Counted from the first letter of the stretch, positions 6,797 to 23,909 are shown. The stretch is 64,000 bases of DNA from Macrostomum lignano (GCA_002269645.1 NIVC01002830.1:1-64000); one strand, 5' to 3'. The notes: a model not told the origin generated them from the letters alone. Translations and numbers: made by a program.

Positions 6797-7532
6797 CTAT
6801 TCATTGTCTGTGAGCTCCATTCTACGTCTGATCTCAAACAAGTCGGTTGGATCACTTATTTCCCTTGTGGTCTGTGGTGCCTCTTCAGCGTCAATGTTTT
6901 TGAGATTATGCAAGCGTTCAAGACGACCGATTCTTCTCACCGATTTCTGCCATTCGGTAAAAACTAAATCTACAAAGACTTTATTTGCAGTAATTCTTAC
7001 TTTGATTTGATCATGCAACGCTGTTGACTGACTCTTCTAAATTCCTCACTTTACCTGTGTTGGTTGCGACGTTTTCTTTAATTCTATCATGCAATGCTGT
7101 TGACTGGTTCATGAACTCTTCTAAATTCCTCACTTTAACTGTGTTTGTGAAAAATCCTTCTTCAAGAATGTGCATTTGCTTATCAATGGAGTTTCTCAGA
7201 AGATTAATTGTCGATGCTAAATTTGTTCTTAAACCGTTGATTTGCGAGACTGCCGAAGTTATTTCTGACCTAAGTTCATTAGCTGCTTGTACAACCTGTA
7301 CATAAAGCTTATCACTTTCAAACTTCTGCCTGGCCACTTTTATGCGGAGATCTTCTATGTTTATCTGTAGCTGGTGCATGGAGCGCTCTAATTGTTTCAG
7401 TCTGTTTTTATTCAGTTTGATCTCTGGGATCTCTTCGTCGCTGTTGATATATCGCCTGTCAAGGATGGATATTTGAGCTGATGTAAGAGCGCTGTTGCCA
7501 GAAATGGATTCACCTGCAAAGTTTATCGACAT
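6797..7532 (-). pseudogene. Coiled-coil protein (~245 aa) with a frameshift from an 8-bp deletion
   Basis: Heptad-rich ORF 7532-7011 continues in ORF 7018-6797. The internal repeat GAAGAGTTCATGAACCAGTCAACAG versus GAAGAGTCAGTCAACAG shows loss of TCATGAAC in the second copy, which explains the frameshift. Confidence 0.65.
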
Positions 7533-7544
7533 CTTTTAATAGCA

Positions 7545-7985
7545 AATTTTTAATTACAGTTCTTTTTTCTTTGCTGATAATCACAAACTGGTAAGGCTGA
7601 TTCCACTTGTCATAGCAAAGATTAACGAATTCCTACTGTGAATTCTTTGTTTGAGTTTTTTGTTGGATTTATGAAATAGGCAGGCGCAATGACCTCATTG
7701 TAAAATCTTTTTAACCTGTCCTGTGGAATGGTTGGAAACAGGAGAATCAGATTGCAGTTCCCGCGAATTGTTTTGTTCGGGAGCTCGAACCAGTTCTGTG
7801 CAATATAAATTACATTACAATTGTTATGTCGCCCTCTTGTAAAATAGTTTTCTATCTGCTTCTGTGGGCCTGTCATACAATCATCAAAGACGATCAAATG
7901 CTATCTCCTCTTTTCTAGCTCATCTGGTTGGGGTAGAAGTTTGGTCTTTGGATCCCACTGTGGATCTCCATAGGTGAACACTTTA
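7545..7985 (-). pseudogene. A32-like DNA packaging ATPase, C-terminal half (Polinton/adintovirus type)
   Basis: Minus-strand translation gives LPQPDELEKRR*HLIVFDDCM (Walker B), YFTRGRHNNCNVIYIAQNWF (Arg-finger/sensor motifs) and, after a frameshift, EFVNLCYDKWNQPYQFVII. Walker A is missing because the gene is truncated by MULE-1. Confidence 0.85.
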
Positions 7986-7988
7986 ATG

Positions 7989-8223
7989 TTCTCCTGTTTT
8001 CTTGTTTGCACTTACTCTCTCCATAGTCGCTTCCCTTGTCACCATATTTAGTCATTCTAGGCTTCCAACTTGAGAATCTAATCATTTCTAGGCACTCTGT
8101 GACGTCTGCTCTTGCTCAATCTGATCACCTGGACTCAAAACGAAAAAACTTGGTATTCTCCTGTTTTCTTGTTTGCACTTACTCTCTCCATAGTCGCTTC
8201 CCTTGTCACCATATTTGGTCATT
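7989..8223. repeat. MULE-1 left arm: ~1.4 copies of a 167-bp unit
   Basis: CTCCTGTTTTCTTGTTTGCACTTACTC recurs at 7991 and 8158 (167 bp apart). Confidence 0.9.
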
Positions 8224-10489
8224 CTTCTGTATGTTAGTTAATGTCTCTATTTTTGCACCAACGATAGCTAATTTCCCACTGCCATGTTTTAATGCTTCCG
8301 CACTTAGTTTTTCCACTTTAACCAACGTCAATCCACCTTGTCCAACTTCAATCTTGCGTTCTCCAACACCATATCACTCCAGTCTTACCTCAACTAGCTT
8401 TTCTGTTTTGATTCATAGCTGTCTAGGCGGCCTTGGCCTTGCACAGCTGCGTGTTGTCGAGCCATGTCTTGCAGGCATACAATGTGATTTTCTGTTTATT
8501 TACAGCGTTATGCAATGTCACACTGTGTCACACTCGGCGTTCAGCGTGCTGCATTACAATGTAGCGGGTGCTACAACTATGAAAAAGCAGATAATTGCAG
8601 TGGAACAAAAGTGTGAAGCTAGCGATAGGAAATGCCGCTCTGGCTTCTTAGCTTCGTGCTGTCGAACTGTATTTGATTATTAACAACTGCCATAGACAAT
8701 AGAAGCATACTTAGTGTTGTAGTGTTGTAGTGTTATATTAAAACACATAGTGCTATAACAATCTTCTGATGTGTTAAGGCTTATTCGAGCGACTGAGGAA
8801 TCCGAGGAGCGGCTGAAGTTTCGACCACCCTCAGGTTCTATTATTCTGTTTGTGACATCGAATGCTGGGTCAAATGCCATTGACGACTGGCGTTGCGATG
8901 GCTACTCATGGATAGACTGTGGTCACCAGAGGTTGCCAAAGTAAGTTACAACTGTTTTAGGTGTCTTTTAGTAGTTTACCTCATGTGCAATTTTTATACT
9001 TTTCTATTGTTTTTCCCTTTGTATTGTTCTACTTTTCTCTCTTAGCTAAATACGCGGGATTTTTCATATTTCAGATCAAAGCCAGCATTTATGAAGTTAT
9101 CGTTTTCAACGAAGATTTCATCAGTCCCTAGACAAGTTGACAACCGTTTCAAACGACTAGCCTACCGACTTATTAATTCGGACGGAACTGTCGATACAAG
9201 GTATTTTGAACACAGGCACTGACGATTCTTATCCTTTCCCTTATTCCCACAAAATTTTCTCTAATTTTAGCCGCACTTTGATTCACTACATGGGGACTCG
9301 CAAGTGCAACCTGAGCAAGTTACGCATGGGAACTCCATAAATGGCAGTCAGTACATTCGAACTTGTCCGTCTGTCCTCGGCCAATTGGCGCAGCAATTAA
9401 GAAAAGAAGGGACGTCTCCATCGACGTACTATCGTTTGCACGCTGCAACGGAGCAGTCGCACCTTGCGTTAGGCATAAGAAACGAGAAGCAGGTGGGCAA
9501 TGCTAAACATGCCGTTGATTGTGTGTCTCGATTGAGTAAGGATGCGCTTTTAACGTGCATCTTATTGCTTATGAGCTGCCTGATTTCACGCGGTCTATTC
9601 GAACGTTTCCGGATCTGTCAATCGTTGCTGGAGAAAGAAATCTGTTAGATATGGCGAACACCATATTAAATTTAGCAGACAGCGCCCAACTTTTGTGGTA
9701 CGATACCGGCTTCAATCTTACCGATGCTCATGTGTCGACACTCGTCATGCGGTTGACTATCTTCGAAAACAACCCGGTATGCCCGATCATGTTTCTGATA
9801 CACGAAAGAAAATTTGAAGCCCGCCATCAGGAACTATGGACATATGCCAATGAGTTGCTCCCTGCACTGAGCCAAGTGCCGTTGGCTTGCGTGATGGATG
9901 CTGAACATGCGCTGCGCAACGCGATGCACTCAGTTCTGCCAGGTATTGCGTTCTTTGGCTGCTGGAATCACCTGCGAGACGACGTACGCCAATGGGTTCG
10001 TAACAACAATGGAACACTCGCTGATGAGTGCGCCTATTCACGAGATCTGACCTGTCTCCTGAAATGCAGTGGAGTTTCTGATTATAACAAATTGTACGCC
10101 GATCTGAAGAAGCAGTGGTCTAAAGACTTCGTGCTGTACTTTGAACAAAATTTACATCCTAGAATTCCCAAATATTACGGGAAGTGGCTCCTCGGTAACC
10201 ACTACTCACCGATCTCAGGAATGACGCAAAACCAAAGCGAGTCTGTGAATGCGCTACTAAAAAGGTTTACTGCACACCAAGTGAAACCGCTTGATGGCCT
10301 TCTCATCAGCCTCTACTGCTTGTCGACATCGTTCTTTAACGACATTCTTCGTGGCGTCACTGGCACCGGAAAGTTCCGACTCAAAGAGGAGTATCAACGG
10401 CTGAGAATGGATCCAGGCGATGTCACACTTATTCCAACTAAGTCTCCCGAGAAGTATTGCAGATAATCGCTAGCGGCAGACTGACCGAA

Positions 10490-10657
10490 ACCCGCGATTC
10501 GCCGCCTGCTGGCCCTGAAGGAGGTCCAACCCGCGATTCGCCGCCTGCTGGCCCTGAAGGAGGTCCAACCCGCGATTCGCCGCCTGCTGGCCCTGAAGGA
10601 GGTCCAACCCGCGATTCGCCGCCTGCTGGCCCTGAAGGAGGCCCAACCCGCGATTCG
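10490..10657 (+). repeat. In-frame 39-bp coding minisatellite (TRDSPPAGPEGGP x4)
   Basis: ACCCGCGATTCGCCGCCTGCTGGCCCTGAAGGAGGTCCA repeated 4+ times between the DDE core and SWIM. Confidence 0.95.
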
Positions 10658-11514
10658 GCATTGGCTGCTGACAGGGATTTTGGCCCGGCACCGGCTGTGA
10701 ATACTGACGCAGCAGCAGCGGCAGAAACCGGGAGTCAGCTAGACTTCACCTTGAACATTAAAGTCACGTTTCTTTCGGATACGTCGGAGTTTCTTGTAAA
10801 CAGCTTTGGAGTGAGCAACGTTGTTACGTTTAGACAAAGCCCACCGCTGTGTTCATGTGTACTGAGACATAATTGCGCACACATTGCTGCAGTTAAACGC
10901 GCGACTGGTTTCCAATTTAAGCTAAATCAACCAAGCAAAAATCTCAGCCAGCTTCAAAGCGTTTTCGAAAACCCGCAGGTAGACCTGGCAGGAAGCATTG
11001 GACTCGTAACGAGCGGAATGACGCTAAAAAGCAGCCTATTATCACAGTTTCCAACGCACACTCCGCAATTGGAAAGCGAAAAGTTTCCACGATGGCCAAT
11101 GGGACGACATCAGTGGTGCCCGTGAAACGGATGGCGACGCACGGCAGTTCAGCAATGGTGTCCTGTATACGAATCGTGCAATTAGATAAATCCGCAGCAT
11201 CGCCTTCTGCTCGACCGATGGTGACCGGCGTTCAGCCAGGAGGGCCCGCCGTGCAGCTTATTTCACTTAACACCGGAGGTATGACAATATTAATGAACTT
11301 TAAACGCTCGTAATTTTCATCCACAGGCTGCTATATCAGCCGACAATTCATACGTTGCTTAGCTACATAAACCTGCTTTTCCCTGACTGCAGAATCCGTC
11401 AGAGCAAGTAAAGTGGCAGCCACGGCATCCATCGTGACGCCAGCGGCGCCCCGCGTGAGGTCAGCGGCGCCCCTTGTGTCGCCAGCGGCGCCCCTCGCTT
11501 TACCATTGAATTTG

Positions 11515-12528
11515 GGACTTGAGAATCCAACCGGAACGTACTGTGCCTTCAACGCTGCCTGTCAGTGCATCGCAGCAGCTGTTGGGTCGTTGCTCCCAGT
11601 TTTTCCAGAATCGCCTCCGGTTGTCTTTTTGCTGAACGCCATTTTGAGCCGAGACAAACAAGTGATTATCAAATTTCACACCGCTGCCTTTTTATGGTGT
11701 GCGAATCAAATGAAAATGGATCCTAAGCAACAAAATTGTGTGCTGGAGGTCCTAACTGGAATTATTTCACTTCGAGAAATTGAGGAGCTCTTTACATGCG
11801 AAGTAGGTTTCCCTGCTCTGTGAAGTTTATTTTTCCCTGCACTATATTTTATGCTCGTGCAATATTTTTCTGCGTTAAATCACAATTGAGTATTTTAATA
11901 CGTGCTTTGATACGCAGACACTAACACAAATAGCTAGCTCGGGATTATGTTATTTGCATTGCATATTATGTTTATGCCATGGTTCTATCTCTTTCAAAAC
12001 TCTACTTGTCAGACGTCATCGACGCGCGTGTGCTCATCGTGCGGATATGTTACACGACTGGACCACAATGAAATTATTACGATCCTGCGCCTGCAAATTA
12101 TCAGGGATGATGATATCGACTCTCCTCATCTGATTCGTGCGTCTCTGTTATCTTTGTCGAATTGATCGGATATTTTGTGTGAGAATTGTACGACCGGTCA
12201 GTGCAGTCACAATCAGACGCTGGAATCACTATCGAAGATTCTCTGTGTCGGAATTGGCCGGGTCAGTTACGATTCCAAACATGGCTCGCGCAAAATAACT
12301 TCGCCAATGCCTGTGGAGCTAAGTCTTCAGCTCAACGGCCGCTCGTACAACCTTCGCGCAGCCGTTGTTCATTTCGGTCGCTCAGCCGAAAATGGTCATT
12401 ACGCTGCCTACACATTTTATGATGGGTACAAATGCATCTTTATTAGCGATTCTAGCGTTCGCGCAGTTTCTTTGTCGTCCGCTTTTGCTGACATCAAGCA
12501 CAATTGCTGCGCTCTATTTTATGGGTAA
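11515..12528 (+). other. USP (peptidase C19) catalytic domain within MULE-1
   Basis: Cys box GLENPTGTYCAFNAACQCI (Cys 11542-11544), QQNCVLE (QQD box), two CxxC finger pairs (CSSC, CENC), LSKILCVGIGRV, His box YNLRAAVVHFGRSAENGHYAAY (His 12397-12399), FISDSSV and terminal ALFY. One in-frame TGA at 12163-12165. Confidence 0.85.
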
Positions 12529-12765
12529 CATTTACCGATCGCTTTGTCCGCTCGTTCTAATCATTTGCTTTCGTAGAAAGCTGTCACACAGTAGATAGTG
12601 TCTCATAACATCCTACGATATAAATTCGGATTTTACGCTCCCTTTTTTACTTTTTATGCACAATTTTGTCCCTCCACTTTCAATACTTAAAATATTTGTA
12701 ACGGTGTGAATAGATACCACAGTGCTTTATAGTGTTTTTAGAAGTGAAGATCAATAAAAGACAAC

Positions 12766-14434
12766 GACTACTCGCTGGAGTTCCGGCCAACCAGCCAGCA
12801 CGCCAACTGCGATTCGCTCTCCCGCCTGCCGCTGCCAAGGCAATTTGAGGAGGAGCCGGCCGTGAACGCTCTGCTGCTAAACGAGGAGACCGGATCCGCC
12901 ATAACGGCTAAGGCAGTGGCGCGGCACACCCGAACGGACGCCGTCCTCGGCCACGTGCTGCGCTGCCTGTAGGCCGGCGTGCCCATGACCGGCTCGGATC
13001 TCATCGACTTTGCCAGGCGTAGCAACGAGCTGAGTGTCGAGCAGGGCTGCATGCTGTGGGGCGCCCGCGTTGTGGTGCCAACGGCTCTGCGGCAAGGCGT
13101 GCTGGACGAGCTGCACCAGGCGCACCCCAGCATCAACCACATTCGAGCGCTGGCCCGCAGCTATGTCTGGTTGGCCAGGCCTTGACAAGCAACTCGAGAC
13201 GACTGTCAAGTCTTGCCGGACCTGCATGCTCAACCAAGCCAACCCTCCCAAGGCGCCAGTGCAGCCATGGCCGTTTCCGGCTGAACCATGGGCGAGGCTG
13301 CACCTGGACTTCGCAGGCCCTGTTGACGGCCGCACCTACCTGGTGATTGTGGACGCCTTTAGTAAGTGGCCGGAGGTTCTTCGGGTGCATAGCGTCACGT
13401 CTATGGCTACCATTGAGCGGCTCCGCGAGGTCTTCGCCAGACTGGGTATCCCCCGAGTACTGGTTTCCAACAACGGCACGCAGTTCACATCTGCGGAGTT
13501 CGCCAAATTCACTAGGCGCAACGGCATCCATCATGTCTTCTCTGCACCATTTCACCCGGCAACGAACGCGCAGGCGGAGAGATTTGTCCAAGTGCTTAAG
13601 CGGCACCTGGTCAAGAGCGGGCACTCAGCGGCCGCTCTGCAGCAAATGTTGATGACTTATCGCAACACGCCGCACTCCATCACCGATGCGGCCCCCAGCC
13701 AGCTGCTCATCGGAAGGAAATTGCGCAGTCGGTTGGACTTGCTGATGCCATCGCTGATGGACAGCATGCAACAACGCCATGAGCAGGAGGTGGAGCAGCA
13801 GCCGCAGGCACGTGATTTCCAAACCGGCAATAAGGTTCTGCTGCAAAACTTTAGTACTGGAGGCACTCGTTGGACTGAAGGTACCGTGCGATCTGCCGGC
13901 GCGCGCAACTGCACTGTTGAAGCTGATGGCACCATCCACCGACGGCACACCGATTAGCTGTTGACAAATTCGCTTCCCGATGCCGAGACTGTGTCATCAC
14001 CATAACTCTCAGATGCGACGACCCCGACAATTGCTGAGATGCCAGACAAAGTTGCTAGACCCATAGACAGCGAGATCATCAACCCTGCTGACAGCATCGG
14101 TGGCACAGTTGCAACAAACACCCAGGCCAGGCGTTACCCACAACGGCGCAGACAACCGCCGGATGGCCTTCAACTATGATTGGGGACTGTTACTTTGACC
14201 TGACTGAATTTCTTTGAACTTTAGGGGGGAGATGTCAGATGTTAGTGCGCAAGCACTAATCATCTAATGTTTATACTGTATATTCAAGTTTATTTTCTGT
14301 CTATGGTCTTAATCTTGAGGACAGCCGCCTACCAAATATATACTCTTATGCAAACGACGGACCACGGCCAGCAAGCGCTTAGACCGAAGCACCGTCATTC
14401 TACATCGCATAGTCTCATCGGCCATAACTCGACA
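12766..14434 (+). mobile_element. 5'-truncated Gypsy (K02A2.6-like) fragment: RNase H end, integrase, PPT, 3' LTR
   Basis: YSLEFRPTSQHANCDSLSRLPLP; LHQAHP..ARSYVW/WPGLD..CRTC; RLHLDFAGP; LVSNNG (D mutated); NAQAERFV. PPT AGGGGGGAGA at 14223-14232. LTR TGTC...GACA at 14233-14434. Stop and frameshift present. Confidence 0.9.
14233..14434 (+). repeat. ~200-bp 3' LTR of the truncated Gypsy
   Basis: Starts TGTCAG directly after a polypurine tract and ends CTCGACA, directly before the MULE-1 right arm. Confidence 0.75.
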
Positions 14435-14975
14435 AAGTGCAAACAAGAAAACAGGAGAATATCAAGTTTTTTTCGTTTTGAGTCCAGGTGATCAGATTGA
14501 GCAAGAGCAGACGTCACAGAGTGCCTAGAAATGATTAGATTCTCAAGTTGGAAGCCTAGAATGACCAAATATAGTGACAAGGGAAGCGACTATGGAGAGA
14601 GTAAGTGCAAACAAGAAAACAGGAGAATACCAAGTTTTTCGTTTTGAGTCCAGGTGATCAGATTGAGCAAGAGCAGACGTCACAGAATGCCTAGAAATGA
14701 TTAGATTCTCAAGTTGGAAGCCTAGAATGACCAAATATAGTGACAAGGGAAGCGACTATGGAAAGAGTAAGTGCAAACAAGAAAACAGGAGAATACCAAG
14801 TTTTTTCGTTTTGAGTCCTGGTGATCAGATTGAGCAAGAGCAGACGTCACAAAGTGCCTAGAAATGATTAGATTCTCAAGTTGGAAGCCTAGAATGACTA
14901 AATATGGTGACAAAGGAAGCGATTATGGAGAGAGTAAGTGTAAACAAGAAAACAGAAGATTACCAAGTGTTCCTT
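14435..14975. repeat. MULE-1 right arm: ~3.2 copies of the 167-bp unit, inverted relative to the left arm
   Basis: AAGTG(C/T)AAACAAG recurs at 14435, 14603, 14769 and 14936; the unit is the reverse complement of 7991-8157. Confidence 0.92.
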
Positions 14976-15556
14976 TTGAGTGTTACTTATTGAGTGACAA
15001 GATTTAGGAAAGAGTTGGATAATGTTGGATTAAAATTTGATTAAAGTTGGAAGAGGTTCTATTAAAGTTGGATTGTAGTTTGAATAAAGTTAGATAGGGT
15101 TGAATTTAATTTAGACTAGGTCTGTATGGCTATATACTTTAACAATAATATACCTTATAGAAGAAACATTATTGCTCTAGATGAATAGGCCTAGTAATTG
15201 AAGAGTAGAGTAGTAGTAGTAGTAAGGATTGGCTCAGGCAAATGGTGCCTGTTGTGCCAACATTAGAAAGTATATTTGGTTATTTTTTGTTTGAAGTTCA
15301 ATTTTAACATAACACATATATGAGATAATTCATATATTTTTAGAATTTGGAAATTAATTTGACTCAAAAAGTGCAAAAATCAAATTAAGCAAGGATAATA
15401 AATTCAAATTTACAAAGTAATAACATATTAAAAAGAAAGTATTTTGAAAGGTTGGTTAAAATATTAGATATTTACCATAGTATAGTTTTGATATATTGTA
15501 GTAAATAGTAAATGATTTGCAAAAATGGGAAGAAAACAAATTTAGGAGAATACTTT

Positions 15557-16691: not shown

Positions 16692-17681
16692 ATGGCCGCA
16701 GGAATCAATGAAGCCCTTGCGCTATTAGCTGAAGAGCTCCGCAACCGACTTGAATTAGGCCCCCTTAGACATGTGAAAATCCAGAAATACCTCCCCAGCC
16801 AAGATATCAGAGTCTGGCTTACCGCATTCGATCAGCGATGCGAGAACGAAGGAATAGATGAGGAAAACCGGAAGCAGGAACTGCTTACCAATCTAGACCT
16901 GAGTACTGCGTTTGCAGCAGTTCAACGCCTCAACCTCCCAGCTAATCTCCCCTATGAAGATTTCAAGGAAAGACTAATCGAAAGATTTGGAAAAGTAGGT
17001 AGCTCCGCCGAATTTCGCGAAGAGTTTAGGAATCGCTGCCAAGGCAGAAACGAATCCACTGACAGTTTTGCCGATGCTTTGATTGAATTAGCCTCCCGCG
17101 CATTCCTAAATATGGATGCTGAGCAAAGAGAGGAAGAACTTGTCGAGCAGTTCATTAAAGGCGTGAGAACCCCTCCCAACACCCGTGAGAAGCTGATCTT
17201 TGCCCAACCGGCTAGTCTCCAAGCCGCTCGCAGAATGCTGCGCAGAATTGAAGCTGCTTATCAGATGTCCCACAAAGGTGGAATCCGAGTGACTAAAGAT
17301 GAGAAAGAGGAGAATAAGGTCAGAACCGATCAATTGATCATTGACCAGCAGACTAAGATTGACCGCCAAGAAAGGCTTATTCAGAACCTGCAGAAGCAAC
17401 TGGCCGAAACAGCGCAATGCGCCCCGCCATCTCAGGTGTTCCCCCAGCAACAGTATAGGCAGCCACCTGCTCAGCAGTACAGGCAACCAAACCCTCAGCT
17501 GTACAGACAGCCTCCCCAGCAGCAGTACAGACCGCAACCTCAGCAGCAGTACAGGCCCCAGCTAATGAACCAGCCGCCAAGACGTGAACCCCCAAGAAGA
17601 AATGAACGTCAGCCCCCTAACCCAAGATATGAGCCGCTGAAGTTCCGCAACCCCCGTGACTCCCAGAAGTCGGGAAACTGA
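16692..17681 (+). CDS. gag: Gag (capsid-like region, coiled coil, Gln/Tyr/Pro/Arg-rich tail, no CCHC knuckle)
   Basis: Intact 329-aa ORF after the PBS, with retrotransposon gag-like motifs (WLTAFD..C, FRNRCQGRNESTDSFADALIELA, EQFIKG). Confidence 0.9.
   Translation: MAAGINEALALLAEELRNRLELGPLRHVKIQKYLPSQDIRVWLTAFDQRCENEGIDEENRKQELLTNLDLSTAFAAVQRLNLPANLPYEDFKERLIERFGKVGSSAEFREEFRNRCQGRNESTDSFADALIELASRAFLNMDAEQREEELVEQFIKGVRTPPNTREKLIFAQPASLQAARRMLRRIEAAYQMSHKGGIRVTKDEKEENKVRTDQLIIDQQTKIDRQERLIQNLQKQLAETAQCAPPSQVFPQQQYRQPPAQQYRQPNPQLYRQPPQQQYRPQPQQQYRPQLMNQPPRREPPRRNERQPPNPRYEPLKFRNPRDSQKSGN
17672..17678 (+). promoter_or_regulatory. -1 ribosomal frameshift slippery site G GGA AAC
   Basis: X XXY YYZ heptamer directly before the gag stop (TGA 17679-17681). 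The -1 frame is stop-free from 17672 and in phase with the pol ATG at 17837 (165 nt). Confidence 0.85.
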
Positions 17682-20600
17682 GAAGCCAGGGTCGAGTTAA
17701 GAGGCCACGCCCCTCAGGCCAAAATATTGCTTACTCTCCGGCCTCCTCATCATTCGAAATTGCCCCCCAACCAAAATACCGGCAACCTCCCCAGTACGGT
17801 TTCCGCTATCCCCGCAAAACCTCTCATGTACAGCCAATGCCTGTGAATAATGCGATATTTACCTCACCCAATAACTTCTCATTACTCGCTTGCGACGAAA
17901 TCGATGACGTCACGCCAATTGCCCCCCATGACCCCCATGTGTACAATGACCCCCATGCGACTACAGCTCATGCGACTGCTTCCCATGTAACCAATGCGAT
18001 TTCTGCTCATCACGCGTCCGCACCCCATGTACCCACTGCGCTTGCACCCCATGTATCCCATGCGATTGAAGCCAATAATGCCTTATCCAGTGCTGAAACC
18101 CGCTCAAAGAAGCGACGAAAGCCAAAACCCAATTCCCCATCCCGAATCGACCTGACTAAGCTAGAAGGCTATGAAGCTGTAATAGTCGGCGATATCCAGA
18201 AAGAATCGATTGATTTCTTGCTAGACACAGGCGCCAGAAATAATTTCCTGAGCCGCTCAACCTGGTCTAAGCTATTCCGTGCCGATCAAATCCGAGACAC
18301 TAGCAAAAGCATTAGTACATTTGACGGTACCCCAGTTCAATTAGAAGGAGAAATATCCGCCCAAGTGAAGTTTGGCGATATCCAAATCGAAGTTGATTTC
18401 CTCCTATGCCGACATGATTGTGACAATATTCTAGGTATGGAATTTTTCCTATCCCAATGTGAAAGCATTCAGCTAGCCAAAGGAATGCTAGTGCTTAATG
18501 AAGGTACCTGTATACCCATGCAGTATACCCGTCTACCCGTGAAAGTTTGTCGAGTCTATACTCAAGAAAGAGTAATCATCCCAGCTAATAGTGCCCTCCG
18601 AATACCCGTGAAATTAGCCAAGAATTGTGAATCAAATTACGGCACTCCCATGACCATTGAAACCATTGGCGATACTATCCGAACCCGTGATTTCTCATTA
18701 GAAATGGTTCCGACCCTAGTAACCATGAAAGAAGGCAAAGGAATTGTCGAGATTATTAACCGCCACCCAGTAGATGTGAATCTAACTAAGACTTCCCTAA
18801 TTGGCTTAGCCAGACCCATGAAGGCTAAAGATTTAACTTATTGGCAAACCCCAACTCCCAACCCCCAACCCTCTGCGAAAGTCAACCAGACTCAATGTAC
18901 TGAAGATTCTTGGATTAATGAAGTGAGCCTTGGCCCTGAATTATCGAATGAACAGCGTAAAGCAGTCATCGATCTTATGAAAGAAAACCGTGAAGCTTTT
19001 TCCCAGAATGAATTAGACATGGGCCTGACACACCTAGTAACCCACGAAATCTCTATTAAAGACCCCACCCCCGTTAGAATCCCAGCTAGACGCATCCCCC
19101 CACACTTGCAAAAGCAAGTTGATGCCCAGTTAGATGATATGTTAGCCAAAAACCTAATTAGACCCTGCTATTCAACCTACTCCACCCCCCTAGTAATTGT
19201 CCCCAAGAAAGATGGTTCTATTAGAATCGTGAGCAATTTCCGAGTGCTCAATTCAAGAGTTAATTATTACCCCTACCCCCTCCCTAATATTCAAGAGACC
19301 TTCTCCCACCTAACTGGTAGCCAATATTTTAGCAGCCTAGACTTAAACTCAGGATACTGGCAAGTCCCCATCAAAGAAGAAGATAAACATCGAACCGCAT
19401 TCTCCACCCTAACTAGAGGCCAATTTGAATATCAAGTAATGGCCCAAGGACTTTCCAATGCCCCCGGAACCTTCCAACGCCTAATGAATTTAGTACTATT
19501 AGGAATTCAACATAAGTTCGCCATGTCCTATATCGATGACATAATAGCCTACTCCCAAACTTTTGCCGAACATTTAGAGCACTTAAGAGAAGTGTTTAAG
19601 CGACTAATTGCCGCAGGTCTGAAGTTGAGACCCAAAAAGTGCAACCTTTTCCATCACGAGTTGAAATATCTAGGACACGTGATTGGCCGACAAGGCATTC
19701 AAACAGACAAGACGAAGATTGAAGCAATCCAAACTTGGCCCCGTCCCAAAGACGTAAAAGAATTACGCAGTTTTCTTGGCCTATGCAATTATTATTGCCG
19801 ATTTGTGAAAAATTATGCTGAAGTGGCTCACCCCCTATTCCAATTGACTCGAAAAGGAGTTCAGAATTTCCAATCTAAGTGGAGCAAAGTGCATGACGAA
19901 GCCTTTGAGTCCCTGAAGCAGCGAATGATGTCTACTGAAGTGTTAGCATACCCCGAATATGTCGAAGATGAAAATGTGAAAATGGTGCTCGACACAGATG
20001 CCAGTGACGACAGGATTGGCGCATGCCTTGGCCAAATCCAGAGTGATGGCATAGAGCGACCAATAGCCTATTTTAGTAGAGCAATGAAGGAATCAGAGAA
20101 GAGATACCCCATTACTCGGAAAGAATTGTTAGCCCTTGTCGACGCTATGAGGCATTTCAGATTTTATCTGATCGGCAAGAAATTCTTAGCCCGAACTGAT
20201 CATAAAGCGATAATTTGGCTCATGAAACAAACTGAAGCAACCGGAATCCTAGGTAGATGGATAGAGCGTCTGAATGAATTCAGGTTCGACATTGAACACA
20301 GAAGCGGCGCAAAACATTCCAATGCCGACGGATTGTCGAGAAGACCAGCTGAGATAGCTGAAGCCCCTGAAGTATCCTCTGAAGCAGCCCCTGAACTTGC
20401 TGAAATAGCACCTGAAGCAACCCCTGAAGTCCCTGACGCAGCCACTGAGCCTGCTGAAGCGATCATTGAAACCCCTGAAGCATTTGAAGAAAATTTTAAG
20501 AAAACTGAGCCAATCCCTGAGAAAGTTGAGAAGTTGACCCCTGTTCCCCTGAGAGATGAGAGTGCTCCCGCTGAAACTAAGGACAACCCCATGTCCCAGT

Positions 20601-22510
20601 CACCTGAAGCCCTGACAGAAAGCGAGACCCAGCTTGAATGTCCCAAATCTAGGACAAAGCTAATTGTCTCAGGTAGAGAAGTAGAAGTAGAAGAAGAGAC
20701 AGGAAAGTGTGAGAAACTGTTAACTGATTATCTCCCCAGCCCCCTGAAGAAAGAACAAATCCAAGAAGCCCAAGCTGCTGACCTCATCATCAAAGCTCTG
20801 TTAGAAGCCAAGAAACAGAAGTTGAGCCAACTTCCCAAAACACCGGACGTGCCAGAAAAGATCAGTAAGCATTATGCGCTGATGAAAATCGATAATGAAT
20901 TATTAACAATTACTGAAGACGGAAAAGACAAAGTAGTTTTGCCCTCATCCCTAGATAAAGCAGTCTTTACTGACCTTCACTGCAGCCCCCTCGCAGGACA
21001 TTTAGGAAGAGATAAGACGCTCCAGAGAATCCGAGAAAGATTTTGGCGACCTGGACTAAGCACTTCAGTTGAGCAATTAATTGCTGAGTGCATCCCCTGC
21101 CTTGAGAGCAAGAAAGGACACTTTGTCCAGGCCCCAGTCCAGTCATTCCCCATTGGCGAAGCATTTAGCCGCCTGCACATAGATATTATCGGTCCAATTT
21201 CTAAAGAAAGCAAACGAGGTCATAAATATGTCCTGACAGTTGTTGATAGTACAACTAGATACCCCTTCGCTTTTCCCATTAGAAACCAAAAGTCAGACAC
21301 AGTTATTAAGATACTACTTGAACGGATAGTAGCAGAGTACGGACAGCCCACCTGGATCCACACAGACAATGGAAAAACTTTCGCTAGTAAACAATTTAAA
21401 GCTTTTTGCGAACTTTATAATATTCGCCACACCTTCACTACCCCCTACCATGCCCAATCTAATGGACTAGTTGAACGTTTCAATAAGCAAGTCAAGTCAA
21501 TCATCACCTGTCTGATCAATAAGGATCATGGTGATTGGGATTTACTAATTCCAGCAGCCCTAGTAGCAGTCCGCACCAGCCCCAATTCAACCACAGGTTT
21601 TTCCCCTCACTTCCTATTATTTGGCAGAGAAGCCACCTTACCTCTAGACACTCAGATCAGAAGTACAGCAGAACACGCTGATTATCCCGCCTACATTACT
21701 AAGCATGCCGAAAGATTAGAGGAAGCTCATAAGATAGTCAAGAAGAAGTTGGAAAAAGTAGTAGAGAAAAGACAAGTCGCCGCTGAAACTAACAAGCTAC
21801 CCCCTAGAATTCCTATAGGTTGCCTTGCACTGATTAATAACCCCCAGCTAGATAGCGAAGAATCCCACAAGTTCCACCGAAAGAAGAGATCCGCCTTTAG
21901 AGTTTTAGCCCAACTATCAGAAGTGGTTTTCAAAGTCCAGAAAGAAGAAGAAGGAGAATTAGTAGGAAAAGAAATGCTCGTGCATCGAGATAACTTAACT
22001 CCAGTCCCGAACTCAACCCCAGAACAAATCACTAAGGAAGGCCAGCGAGATGCCTCTGATTCCGCCCCTGTTCCCATCCCCACTTCCGCTAAACCTAAGA
22101 GACAACCTGTAATTAAGGAAGGCCAACCCCGCCGAAATTCCCAAAAATTAATCTTGCCCGAACCAGTTGAATCAGAAGAAGAATCCGATGAAGAAGAAAT
22201 TAATTGGAGATGCCAAATTAGAGAAGCAGAGAACGAAGAGTTAGAAGAAGGAGACAATGAAATCCAGCCAGAAGAATGGAGTGAAGCCCAAACAGAGGAA
22301 GCGAATGAAATGACCGATGAGTCAGAGAGTGAGGCCCCAAACGAAGAGATCCCTGAGCCCCAACCCCCCTCTCCTGCCCCGCGAGATCCCGAACCCCCGC
22401 GCCGTCACCCCTACAATTTAAGGCCCCCACCCCAAAATAAACAGCGTTGCAACTGCCATCTAGACAGACTACTAATAGCACTAAACCTCTTGCGCAACTT
22501 AGAATTTTAG
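17672..22510 (+). CDS. pol: Pol polyprotein (protease, RT, RNase H, integrase), probably translated as Gag-Pol by -1 frameshift
   Basis: FLLDTGA (PR), YIDD (RT, 19529-19540), LDTDAS..IGACL (RH), H-x4-H...C-x2-C zinc finger, LHIDIIG / IHTDNG / NGLVERFN (IN DDE). Uninterrupted ORF of more than 1550 aa. Confidence 0.95.
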   Translation, partial: GKLRSQGRVKRPRPSGQNIAYSPASSSFEIAPQPKYRQPPQYGFRYPRKTSHVQPMPVNNAIFTSPNNFSLLACDEIDDVTPIAPHDPHVYNDPHATTAHATASHVTNAISAHHASAPHVPTALAPHVSHAIEANNALSSAETRSKKRRKPKPNSPSRIDLTKLEGYEAVIVGDIQKESIDFLLDTGARNNFLSRSTWSKLFRADQIRDTSKSISTFDGTPVQLEGEISAQVKFGDIQIEVDFLLCRHDCDNILGMEFFLSQCESIQLAKGMLVLNEGTCIPMQYTRLPVKVCRVYTQERVIIPANSALRIPVKLAKNCESNYGTPMTIETIGDTIRTRDFSLEMVPTLVTMKEGKGIVEIINRHPVDVNLTKTSLIGLARPMKAKDLTYWQTPTPNPQPSAKVNQTQCTEDSWINEVSLGPELSNEQRKAVIDLMKENREAFSQNELDMGLTHLVTHEISIKDPTPVRIPARRIPPHLQKQVDAQLDDMLAKNLIRPCYSTYSTPLVIVPKKDGSIRIVSNFRVLNSRVNYYPYPLPNIQETFSHLTGSQYFSSLDLNSGYWQVPIKEEDKHRTAFSTLTRGQFEYQVMAQGLSNAPGTFQRLMNLVLLGIQHKFAMSYIDDIIAYSQTFAEHLEHLREVFKRLIAAGLKLRPKKCNLFHHELKYLGHVIGRQGIQTDKTKIEAIQTWPRPKDVKELRSFLGLCNYYCRFVKNYAEVAHPLFQLTRKGVQNFQSKWSKVHDEAFESLKQRMMSTEVLAYPEYVEDENVKMVLDTDASDDRIGACLGQIQSDGIERPIAYFSRAMKESEKRYPITRKELLALVDAMRHFRFYLIGKKFLARTDHKAIIWLMKQTEATGILGRWIERLNEFRFDIEHRSGAKHSNADGLSRRPAEIAEAPEVSSEAAPELAEIAPEATPEVPDAATEPAEAIIETPEAFEENFKKTEPIPEKVEKLTPVPLRDESAPAETKDNPMSQSPEALTESETQLECPKSRTKLIVSGREVEVEEETGKCEKLLTDYLPSPLKKEQIQEAQAADLIIKALLEAKKQKLSQLPKTPDVPEKISKHYALMKIDNELLTITEDGKDKVVLPSSLDKAVFTDLHCSPLAGHLGRDKTLQRIRERFWRPGLSTSVEQLIAECIPCLESKKGHFVQAPVQSFPIGEAFSRLHIDIIGPISKESKRGHKYVLTVVDSTTRYPFAFPIRNQKSDTVIKILLERIVAEYGQPTWIHTDNGKTFASKQFKAFCELYNIRHTFTTPYHAQSNGLVERFNKQVKSIITCLINKDHGDWDLLIPAALVAVRTSPNSTTGFSPHFLLFGREATLPLDTQIRSTAEHADYPAYITKHAERLEEAHKIVKKKLEKVVEKRQVAAETNKLPPRIPIGCLALINNPQLDSEESHKFHRKKRSAFRVLAQLSEVVFKVQKEEEGELVGKEMLVHRDNLTPVPNSTPEQITKEGQRDASDSAPVPIPTSAKPKRQPVIKEGQPRRNSQKLILPEPVESEEESDEEEINWRCQIREAENEELEEGDNEIQPEEWSEAQTEEANEMTDESESEAPNEEIPEPQPPSPAPRDPEPPRRHPYNLRPPPQNKQRCNCHLDRLLIALNLLRNLEF

Positions 22511-22886: not shown

Positions 22887-23909
22887 ATGTACTCCGAGGA
22901 GAGTCTTAGGCAATTAGAGGATGACCTCCGCCTCAGCGATTCTGACGCTGATGAGTTCGACGACGAATCAGATAGCGACTTGCCTGTCCCCGAGCGCCAG
23001 CCTACGAGACCAAGTAAGCCCGGTCCCAAGCCCCGCATCGCCTCGGTTGTGACTCGTCCTCCGCCATCCACCTCAAACGCCTGCCCACCGTCATCCGCCT
23101 CAGACGCCTGTCCTCCGCCATCCACCTCAAACGCCTGCCCACCGTCATCCACCTCAGACGCCCGCCCGTCGCCATCCATCTCGGAAGCTCGAGTAGCACT
23201 GCTCAAGCGTCACGCCGACGTGCCAGTTGCTATCTCCCCGGCCGCCATTCAACGCCAACCCCCCAACACCAAGTCGGCTATCGTTTTGAGCACGAGTGAA
23301 GCCCCGCCGCCGCCCATCCGCAAGAGACTTGGACCCCGTCCTTCATCAGCGCAACAAGAGTCTCGACCCCGCTCCCGATCTCCGCCGAAGCAGCAGCCTG
23401 TGAAACCTCTTGTCACCCCGCCGCCGAATTATGGAGTACGGCCGATGAACCAGCCGCGTTCCCGCCCCGCTCCGCCGATCAAAATGGAGCCACTGGATTC
23501 TGGCATACCGCCCCTGATGGCCGGCTTTGTCAGGCAGGATCAGCCGCTGCGCGAAATCGGCGGTAACTTCACACAAGCTGTCGAGAGCCTGCCGGAGGCT
23601 CAGCGTGCCAGCTACCGCCGCCTGATTACGGCCATTAAGCTGTACTTGGTTCAGGCTGGAAGGTTTCGAGACGGACGCGAATTCCCACAGCGCGAGACTC
23701 TGCGGCCGGTTTTAAATAATCTGCGCCAACTGCAGCCCGTGCACGCAGTCGCTGCTTGGAGGCGCGCTGTGCATTACGCACTATCGGACCTTCGTCGCGG
23801 CCCTCGACGTTTCAACGAGCAGAGCCTCGGCCTCGAAATTCGCTGGCTCGGCCAGGAGTGCGGCTGGCCGTATCGTAATCAACTGCCAAGCGAGTTTAAT
23901 ATGTTTTAG
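22887..23909 (+). CDS. Gypsy ORF3: 340-aa accessory protein of unknown function (not env-like)
   Basis: Intact ATG-to-TAG ORF between pol and the 3' LTR: acidic N-terminus, 27-bp PPSTSNACP-type repeats, Pro/Ser/Arg-rich middle and ~110-aa helical-looking C-terminus. No signal peptide or TM segment. Confidence 0.8.
   Translation: MYSEESLRQLEDDLRLSDSDADEFDDESDSDLPVPERQPTRPSKPGPKPRIASVVTRPPPSTSNACPPSSASDACPPPSTSNACPPSSTSDARPSPSISEARVALLKRHADVPVAISPAAIQRQPPNTKSAIVLSTSEAPPPPIRKRLGPRPSSAQQESRPRSRSPPKQQPVKPLVTPPPNYGVRPMNQPRSRPAPPIKMEPLDSGIPPLMAGFVRQDQPLREIGGNFTQAVESLPEAQRASYRRLITAIKLYLVQAGRFRDGREFPQRETLRPVLNNLRQLQPVHAVAAWRRAVHYALSDLRRGPRRFNEQSLGLEIRWLGQECGWPYRNQLPSEFNMF

Follow-up and report, generated by a model that had tools for sequence, protein, structure and literature searches.

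Organization of the transposase-USP gene

We analyzed a 64,000-nucleotide stretch of DNA from Macrostomum lignano (GCA_002269645.1, NIVC01002830.1:1-64000; hereafter, the window), in which a preliminary description had proposed a Mutator-like transposase spliced in frame to a ubiquitin-specific protease (USP; peptidase family C19). Region 8600-12700 was translated in three frames and then read against homologues. The results revealed one gene on the plus strand, with five exons between 8774 and 12528 and a conceptual protein of 1060 residues. The predicted product comprises, in order, a WRCDGY region resembling a DNA-binding domain, a DDE transposase of the Mutator-like element (MULE) type, a SWIM-like motif (CxCx5CxH), a basic repeat-rich linker, and a complete USP (C19). 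The parts of the gene, with the homologues that support them, are as follows.

8774-8940, plus strand: exon 1, N-terminal region, with DDWRCDGYSW at 8882-8911; conserved in P0001 and P0004
8941-9073, plus strand: intron (GTAAGT...TTTCAG), phase 2; splicing yields in-frame ...RLPK/SKPAF
9074-9200, plus strand: exon 2 (SKPAFMKL...DGTVDT), with the homologous segments NNFKRHAYQL (P0004) and DNRFKKHVWRL (P0001)
9201-9270, plus strand: intron (GTATTT...TTTTAG), phase 2; splicing yields DT/SRTLIHYMG, compare VLIHYTG in P0001
9271-11278, plus strand: exon 3, DDE core, 39-bp repeat, SWIM-like motif, and basic linker; homology to P0001, P0004, P0005, P0006, and P0020
11279-11392, plus strand: intron (GTATGA...CTGCAG), phase 1; the junction is LISLVTG/ESVRASK in two M. 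lignano gene models (P0002 and P0003)
11393-11802, plus strand: exon 4, 21-bp peptide repeat and then the first USP half; 51% identical to M. lignano P0008 and 40% identical to L005
11803-12012, plus strand: intron (GTAGGT...TGTCAG), phase 0; position kept in related USPs
12013-12528, plus strand: exon 5, second USP half through the stop codon; Pfam UCH and PDB matches, 96% identical to P0002

All four introns have GT-AG borders and preserve the reading frame, and the linker is open from the SWIM-like motif to the donor site at 11279. The in-frame joining of transposase and USP was thus borne out for the five-exon gene. Of the two introns described previously, 11803-12012 was correct in its GT-AG borders and its phase, whereas 11279-11326 was not, the junction in P0002 and P0003 corresponding to 11279-11392. 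The acceptor at 11326 would leave an in-frame TAA near 11365, which is removed with the longer intron. The position of the last intron was evident in two relatives: similarity to P0008 stopped exactly at ...SCE, and an intron of ~1.25 kb lies at the same point in L005. In L005-L007 (Logan SRR31628425/394/392), the USP is encoded by two clean exons around this intron; the gene caller had read TGA as Trp, such that P0155 has W at the stops and its 302-aa product crosses the intron.

The linker comprises ~200 residues and is basic, flexible, of low complexity, and rich in repeats. Tandem Repeats Finder identified an in-frame 39-bp repeat of 4.3 copies with 99% matches (10489-10657), and an in-frame 21-bp repeat of 3.1 copies with 80% matches lies at 11432-11497. 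The linker counterparts in the M. lignano paralogues P0008 and P0009 consist of different peptide repeats, suggesting that the linker evolves by repeat turnover. The P0002 and P0003 gene models begin in the linker and continue into the USP. The parts of the conceptual protein were searched separately; the whole protein had given only one match, with low-complexity words probably dominating the candidate list.

Comparison of the sequence with its homologues revealed four frameshifts in this copy, all of them -1 and all in exon 3 (at about 9295, 9549, 10451, and 10966). Three of the four lie within G4 or T4 runs, and one added base restores the homology. In addition, exon 5 contains one in-frame TGA (12163-12165), at which P0002 has Arg. 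The stops and frameshifts noted previously were therefore present in part, the four shifts and this TGA standing and the TAA near 11365 proving to be intronic. Such frameshifts are as much a signature of long-read assembly error as of decay, and the copy may thus be less broken than it appears; they may be assembly errors, in which case the gene is perhaps nearly intact and the TGA at 12163 would be its one disabling mutation.

Transposase region

The DDE motifs of the window protein are LWYDTGF (D at 9702-9704), CVMDAEHA (D at 9897-9899), CWNH (9960-9971), and QSESVN (E at 10239-10241). YDTGF, VMDAEH, CWNH, and SESVN aligned with P0001, P0004, and P0020, giving the MULE DDE triad together with the C/DxxH motif. 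The region was homologous to MULE-domain proteins at E values from 1e-77 to 1e-93, including P0001 (1e-77), P0004 (2e-85), P0005, and P0006. The DDE core reported in the preliminary description was therefore recovered with all of its motifs. The Pfam MULE profile (PF10551) exceeded its cut-off in P0001 (36.4 bits) and P0005 (29 bits), and PF00872 matched P0001 weakly. The homology to P0001 and P0005 places the predicted transposase in the MULE superfamily.

Downstream of the DDE core, the SWIM-like motif reads CSCVLRHNCAH (10850-10894) and is conserved in P0001 and P0020. At the N-terminus, DDWRCDGYSW corresponds to DDDWRCDGYSF in P0001 and ADDWRCDGYRW in P0004, and this module exhibited weak Pfam matches to CG-1 in the window (E 0.018) and to WRKY in P0004 (E 0.055). 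The WRCDGY region may be a putative WRKY/GCM1-type DNA-binding domain of this MULE clade.

USP domain

The Pfam UCH profile (PF00443) matched the window at E 3.5e-12 (47 bits; cut-off, 23.9). A phmmer search of PDB sequences gave nine matches, every one of them a USP, including USP15, USP12, USP46, and USP35; the C-terminus scored as a USP and as no other fold. Every USP landmark of the preliminary description was found, in order. The Cys box lies at 11515-11568 (catalytic Cys at 11542-11544) and the QQ box at 11725-11754; in exon 5, they are followed by two CxxC zinc-ribbon pairs (CSSC and CENC), the His box at 12358-12411 (catalytic His at 12397-12399), the catalytic Asp at 12448-12450 within ISDSS, and the C-terminal ALFYG preceding the stop at 12526-12528. 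When the sequences were multiply aligned, all three catalytic residues (Cys, His, and Asp) matched their counterparts in P0020, L005, and canonical USPs. These results confirmed the predicted USP-family domain with an intact Cys-His-Asp set, from which we infer a deubiquitinase function.

The domain is unusual in two of its motifs. In the Cys box, the spacing from the conserved Asn to the Cys is longer by one residue, and the QQ box also deviates from the common form. When 1.84 billion representatives were searched exhaustively with phmmer, only 157 proteins were retrieved at E<=1e-3, indicating that the USP domain is very divergent; outside the transposon-like group, the long alignments were mostly about 25-32% identical to the window USP.

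Structure prediction was examined on the relative P0020. The AlphaFold2 model of its USP exhibited predicted local distance difference test (pLDDT) scores of >90 over residues 445-729, and Foldseek matched it to USP21, USP46, Ubp8, USP14, and USP30 (E about 1e-18; target TM-scores 0.70-0.76). USP18, which acts on ISG15, was also among the structural matches. The model was used for the USP part only, the transposase part being poorly modelled, and the fold assigned to the window's USP is that of this homologue. The confident USP-like model agrees with the earlier assignment of the C-terminus.

Recurrence of the fusion and alternative C-terminal modules

The DDE, SWIM-like, and USP regions occur in a single uninterrupted open reading frame (ORF), P0020, on contig L003 (ENA ERZ25039471). 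In P0020, the C-terminal half of the transposase family (phmmer E 2e-23) is combined with a SWIM-like motif, a linker, and a complete USP (Pfam UCH E 2.6e-15). When the conceptual window protein was compared with L003 by using tblastn, a single high-scoring segment pair spanned query residues 246-1059 (E 2.6e-39). The sample that yielded L003 contains a further such contig, L008, whose transposase ORF (E 6e-51 and 36% identity to P0020) precedes a Cys-box piece and the remaining USP on one strand.

Further copies were found in M. lignano. A0A1I8IIT2 (P0002 in UniRef) is 96% identical to the second USP half and A0A1I8GN48 (P0003) is 98% identical over the linker and the middle of the USP; at least two further M. 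lignano loci are thus 96-98% identical to the window. The M. lignano proteins P0008 and P0009 are about 50% identical to the window, and the genome therefore holds at least two diverged USP-bearing families. Look-ups of the exact proteins P0002, P0008, and P0009 and of the window ORF at 9555-10463 yielded no record. Diverged USP copies are also present in other sequencing runs. The transposase relatives are multi-copy, with 17 and 6 cluster members, mostly on separate contigs.

Two motifs link these USPs. A variant QQ box, Q[QN]C[AV]xE[FV], is common to the window, L005, P0008, P0010, and P0020, and a C-terminal C[CV]AL[FLI][YF] is common to the window, P0002, P0020, and P0043. Both were rare among the roughly 150 nearest USPs, which favours a common origin of the transposon-linked USPs. 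Among 150 USP matches, only P0020 resembled the window transposase, and a Pfam scan of ten other long USP matches found no transposase domain.

The preliminary description had named three outcomes that would have spoken against the fusion, namely that the USP region scores as another fold, that the USP exons belong to a separate host gene, or that other family copies lack the USP. The first is answered by the USP matches given above. For the second we found no evidence, given the open linker, the linker-USP joins in P0002 and P0003, and the single ORF of L003; as to the third, the USP recurs in L003 and L008. These comparisons of sequences show that the fusion is not a one-off, that it persists in elements very distant from one another, and that the predicted USP is a lineage trait of the transposase clade.

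Other relatives carry a different module. A Ulp1-like (C48) domain followed by a PHD finger forms the C-terminus of P0001 (1443 aa) and of the ORF that lies downstream of P0004 in L001. Both contain the Ulp1-like signature H...D...C (HWVV/FDS/GTDCG), their C-termini match each other (E 7e-27), and the L001 ORF matched Pfam C48 (E 1.3e-3) and PHD (1.8e-8). No Pfam match to Peptidase C48 was found in the window, in which the module is C19. The occurrence of either a USP or C48 with PHD at the same C-terminal position shows that the clade has exchanged one isopeptidase module for another. These alignments show a transposase clade carrying, at the same place, one of two unrelated predicted isopeptidase modules. 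We also observed P0038 (1402 aa), a near relative of the USP, in which UCH (423-691) and Peptidase_C48 (1052-1179) occur in one protein.

Comparison with known systems

Mutator-superfamily elements that carry Ulp1 (C48) are known, for example, the plant KI-MULE/Kaonashi and MuDR elements (PMC2836005). The window element resembles them in being a Mutator-superfamily transposon with an accessory cysteine isopeptidase of the ubiquitin/ubiquitin-like type, and its relatives P0001 and L001 have a C48-like domain at that place. However, the window protease is a USP (clan CA, C19), whereas Ulp1 belongs to clan CE (C48), and the USP is fused in frame to the transposase with no PHD after it.

Ulp1 and OTU domains have been described in MULE, Ginger, and Helitron elements (PMC2836005, PMC9741609). 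Ginger1 elements carry OTU or Ulp1 plus PHD (Bao et al. 2010, PMC2836005), and Helitron/Helentron elements carry OTU and VTD domains, the latter being active deubiquitinases (Erven et al. 2022, PMC9741609). For Ginger, MuDR, and Helitron elements, Ulp1 and OTU have been proposed to protect transposition proteins or to alter ubiquitin/SUMO repair signalling (PMC2836005), an idea that the active Helitron VTD domains partly support at the biochemical level (PMC9741609). Helitron and Ginger1 resemble the window element in that a deubiquitinase or ubiquitin-like protease is fused to a transposition protein, for which the same role has been proposed; in contrast to the window element, they belong to rolling-circle or integrase-like classes and carry other protease families, with no USP fold.

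The only precedent that we found for C19 joined to a DDE transposase is Trichomonas vaginalis XP_001314237.1, in which transposase_11 (IS5-like DDE) and Peptidase C19 are mentioned in passing (PMC2836005). This single protein, likened here by its description only, differs from the window protein in its IS5/PIF-like rather than MULE superfamily and in its protist host. The accessory features listed in MULE surveys are SWIM, FLYWCH, PHD, OTU, and SET, with no USP (PMC6446971, PMC13359780). We found no description of a MULE-USP fusion in full-text searches of the literature (Repbase Reports not covered), which is in line with the preliminary description of this cargo as unfamiliar. Transposons with ubiquitin/SUMO proteases are thus already known, and the MULE-USP combination is apparently undescribed.

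Membership in Rehavkus was suspected from the PHD finger of the relatives and from the arrays near the ends of the element, and was rejected on the basis of the DDE comparison. The hidden Markov model (HMM) of the family scored 0-6 bits against the DDE domains of six Rehavkus elements (supplement to Dupeyron et al. 2019, PMC6446971), and the hhalign probability was 1.8%. The likeness consists of an animal host, tandem arrays near the ends, and the presence of PHD, which is a hallmark of Rehavkus (PMC6446971), in relatives of the window transposase. The window transposase itself, however, is not detectably similar, and no 9-bp target-site duplication was found. No PHD finger is present in the window protein, which ends with the USP at 12528; among the relatives, only P0001 and the L001 ORF have one. 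A Pack-MULE was also considered and rejected: the element encodes its own transposase, and the USP, with its 157 matches in total, has no close non-transposon relative.

Inverted arms and element ends

An inverted-repeat search identified two arms flanking the gene, and a retroelement fragment also lies between them.

7976-8225, plus strand: left inverted arm, in which a 167-bp unit is repeated in tandem ~1.5 times (inverted-repeat search, blastn of the unit)
12770-14400, edges approximate, plus strand: GC-rich long terminal repeat (LTR) retrotransposon integrase fragment (Pfam rve E 7e-13; ORF 13034-13957)
14435-14981, minus strand: right inverted arm, in which the same unit (166-167 bp) is repeated ~3.3 times in the opposite orientation (inverted-repeat search, blastn, Tandem Repeats Finder)

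The arms are 95-98% identical. The 166-167 bp unit was found nowhere else in the window, and no inner inverted repeats were found between 8226-8800 and 12500-14450. The arms may be subterminal arrays of the element. Tandem arrays were also observed near the transposase genes of relatives, with 147-bp units upstream in L002 (3669-4553) and 45-bp units downstream in L003 (4245-4600); subterminal minisatellites may therefore be a trait of the family.

The retroelement fragment sits between the USP stop and the right arm, and P0003 reads from the USP into this same integrase fragment. The shared USP-retroelement junction implies that at least one other copy has this arrangement, either because the element transposed once the fragment had inserted or because the genome was duplicated.

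Interpretation of the element

On this evidence, the locus is quite probably a copy of an autonomous Mutator-like transposon of M. lignano or a closely related species that encodes a transposase and a USP in a single gene; the copy is damaged, at least in this assembly. The earlier reading of a transposase-USP fusion is thereby supported. Several observations weigh against this reading. No start codon was identified for the five-exon gene (8774-12528). The Pfam MULE profile scored 20 bits on the window copy, below its cut-off of 27.6, and the Pfam SWIM model had no match at E<=0.1 in the window protein or the scanned relatives; of the SWIM finger described previously, only the conserved CxCx5CxH motif was found. 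The P0002 and P0003 models begin past the SWIM-like motif and omit the Cys-box exon, and the models alone are thus no proof of a transposase-USP transcript. The two arms stop at different phases of the unit, no target-site duplication was found at them among the shared 7-10-mers checked, and neither similarity nor inverted repeats were found outside them. The preliminary description placed the gene inside inverted arms, and these are real; they consist, however, of arrays of a tandem unit and are only possibly subterminal parts of the element. Finally, no second copy of any part of 7900-15100 is present within the window.

The mechanism that we infer for such an element is as follows. The transposase part would bind the element ends and cut and paste the DNA, and the USP, tethered through the linker, would strip ubiquitin or a ubiquitin-like modifier from nearby proteins. 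The target may be the transposase itself, which would be spared proteasomal turnover; alternatively, the USP may act at the element on chromatin or on repair factors, and the activity would then counter silencing or aid gap repair. We prefer a version in which a repressive or degradative conjugate is removed near the transposition complex, given that a SUMO-type protease and a chromatin reader (PHD) occur together in the sister elements.

A different account of the same gene is that it belongs to a domesticated host family derived from a MULE and no longer mobile, of which the window would contain a decayed paralogue. The missing target-site duplication and the lack of true terminal inverted repeats are what such a family would leave, and UniRef lists the proteins as host proteins. 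In addition, the intron position, the USP frame, and the catalytic residues have been kept in L005 and P0008 at only 40-50% identity, suggesting purifying selection. However, the catalytic DDE residues are retained as well, and the gene lies between inverted repeat arrays in a transposon-dense region and is disrupted in this assembly. Several near-identical and diverged copies exist and the relatives are multi-copy, and in one other sample two diverged families, represented by L003 and L008, co-occur. We therefore regard domestication as distinctly unlikely. A chance juxtaposition, or a Pack-MULE-style capture of a host USP downstream of a MULE transposase in one lineage, is largely refuted and highly improbable. 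Members of this transposase family are also linked to a USP in L003, as one ORF, and in L008; no close host parent of the USP was found, the identities outside the transposon-like group being as low as those given above; and the frame is continuous over the linker from the SWIM-like motif to the USP and over the phase-matched introns. These points outweigh the introns within the USP part itself, the starts of the M. lignano gene models after the SWIM-like motif, and the retroelement fragment that also ended up between the arms, all of which a capture would explain.

The same architecture may also be read with another substrate, the USP fold acting on a ubiquitin-like modifier of the SUMO, ISG15, or NEDD8 type and functionally replacing the Ulp1-type protease of the sister elements. 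USPL1 is a USP-fold enzyme specific for SUMO. The C48 (Ulp1-like) domain at the same position in the sister elements, the strong divergence of the USP with its atypical Cys-box spacing and QQ box, and the presence of USP18 among the structural matches would agree with such a substrate. The best structural and sequence matches, however, are ordinary ubiquitin-specific USPs, and nothing in the sequence points to a substrate; we consider this variant unlikely. We retain the reading of a probably mobile element whose USP would act as a deubiquitinase.

More tentatively, it is conceivable, if still doubtful, that USP-MULEs persist as a living lineage, both in flatworms and in one or more other eukaryotes, in which a tethered, active isopeptidase would be needed for transposition or for escape from silencing and would be interchangeable with Ulp1 plus PHD. 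If this holds true, the stripping of ubiquitin or SUMO at the transposition complex or on local chromatin would be a general, modular counter-defence of the clade, and the clade would supply a highly divergent USP subfamily not recognised before. Transposons with Ulp1, OTU, or VTD are known. The swap between C48 with PHD and an unrelated C19 USP is natural evidence that the activity, and not the particular fold, matters, and it provides matched pairs of elements for testing the role of the protease in transposition. The divergent USP subgroup is annotated as an ordinary host "ubiquitinyl hydrolase", which affects flatworm gene counts.

Neighbouring sequences

A Pfam scan revealed that the surroundings of the gene are rich in transposons. 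Two minus-strand ORFs, one of 173 aa (coiled-coil-like) and one of 91 aa, lie directly beside the left arm (7011-7897). They were considered as Polinton/Maverick genes, the 91-aa ORF being a candidate packaging ATPase; Pfam gave no match, and this assignment was dropped. On the other side of the gene, an apparently intact Gypsy-type LTR retrotransposon occupies 16692-22510. A 340-aa proline/serine-rich ORF without a Pfam match lies downstream of its pol (22887-23909). The retrotransposon comprises a gag ORF (16692-17681) and an uninterrupted 1557-aa pol (17837-22510) with Pfam protease, reverse transcriptase, RNase H, and integrase domains.

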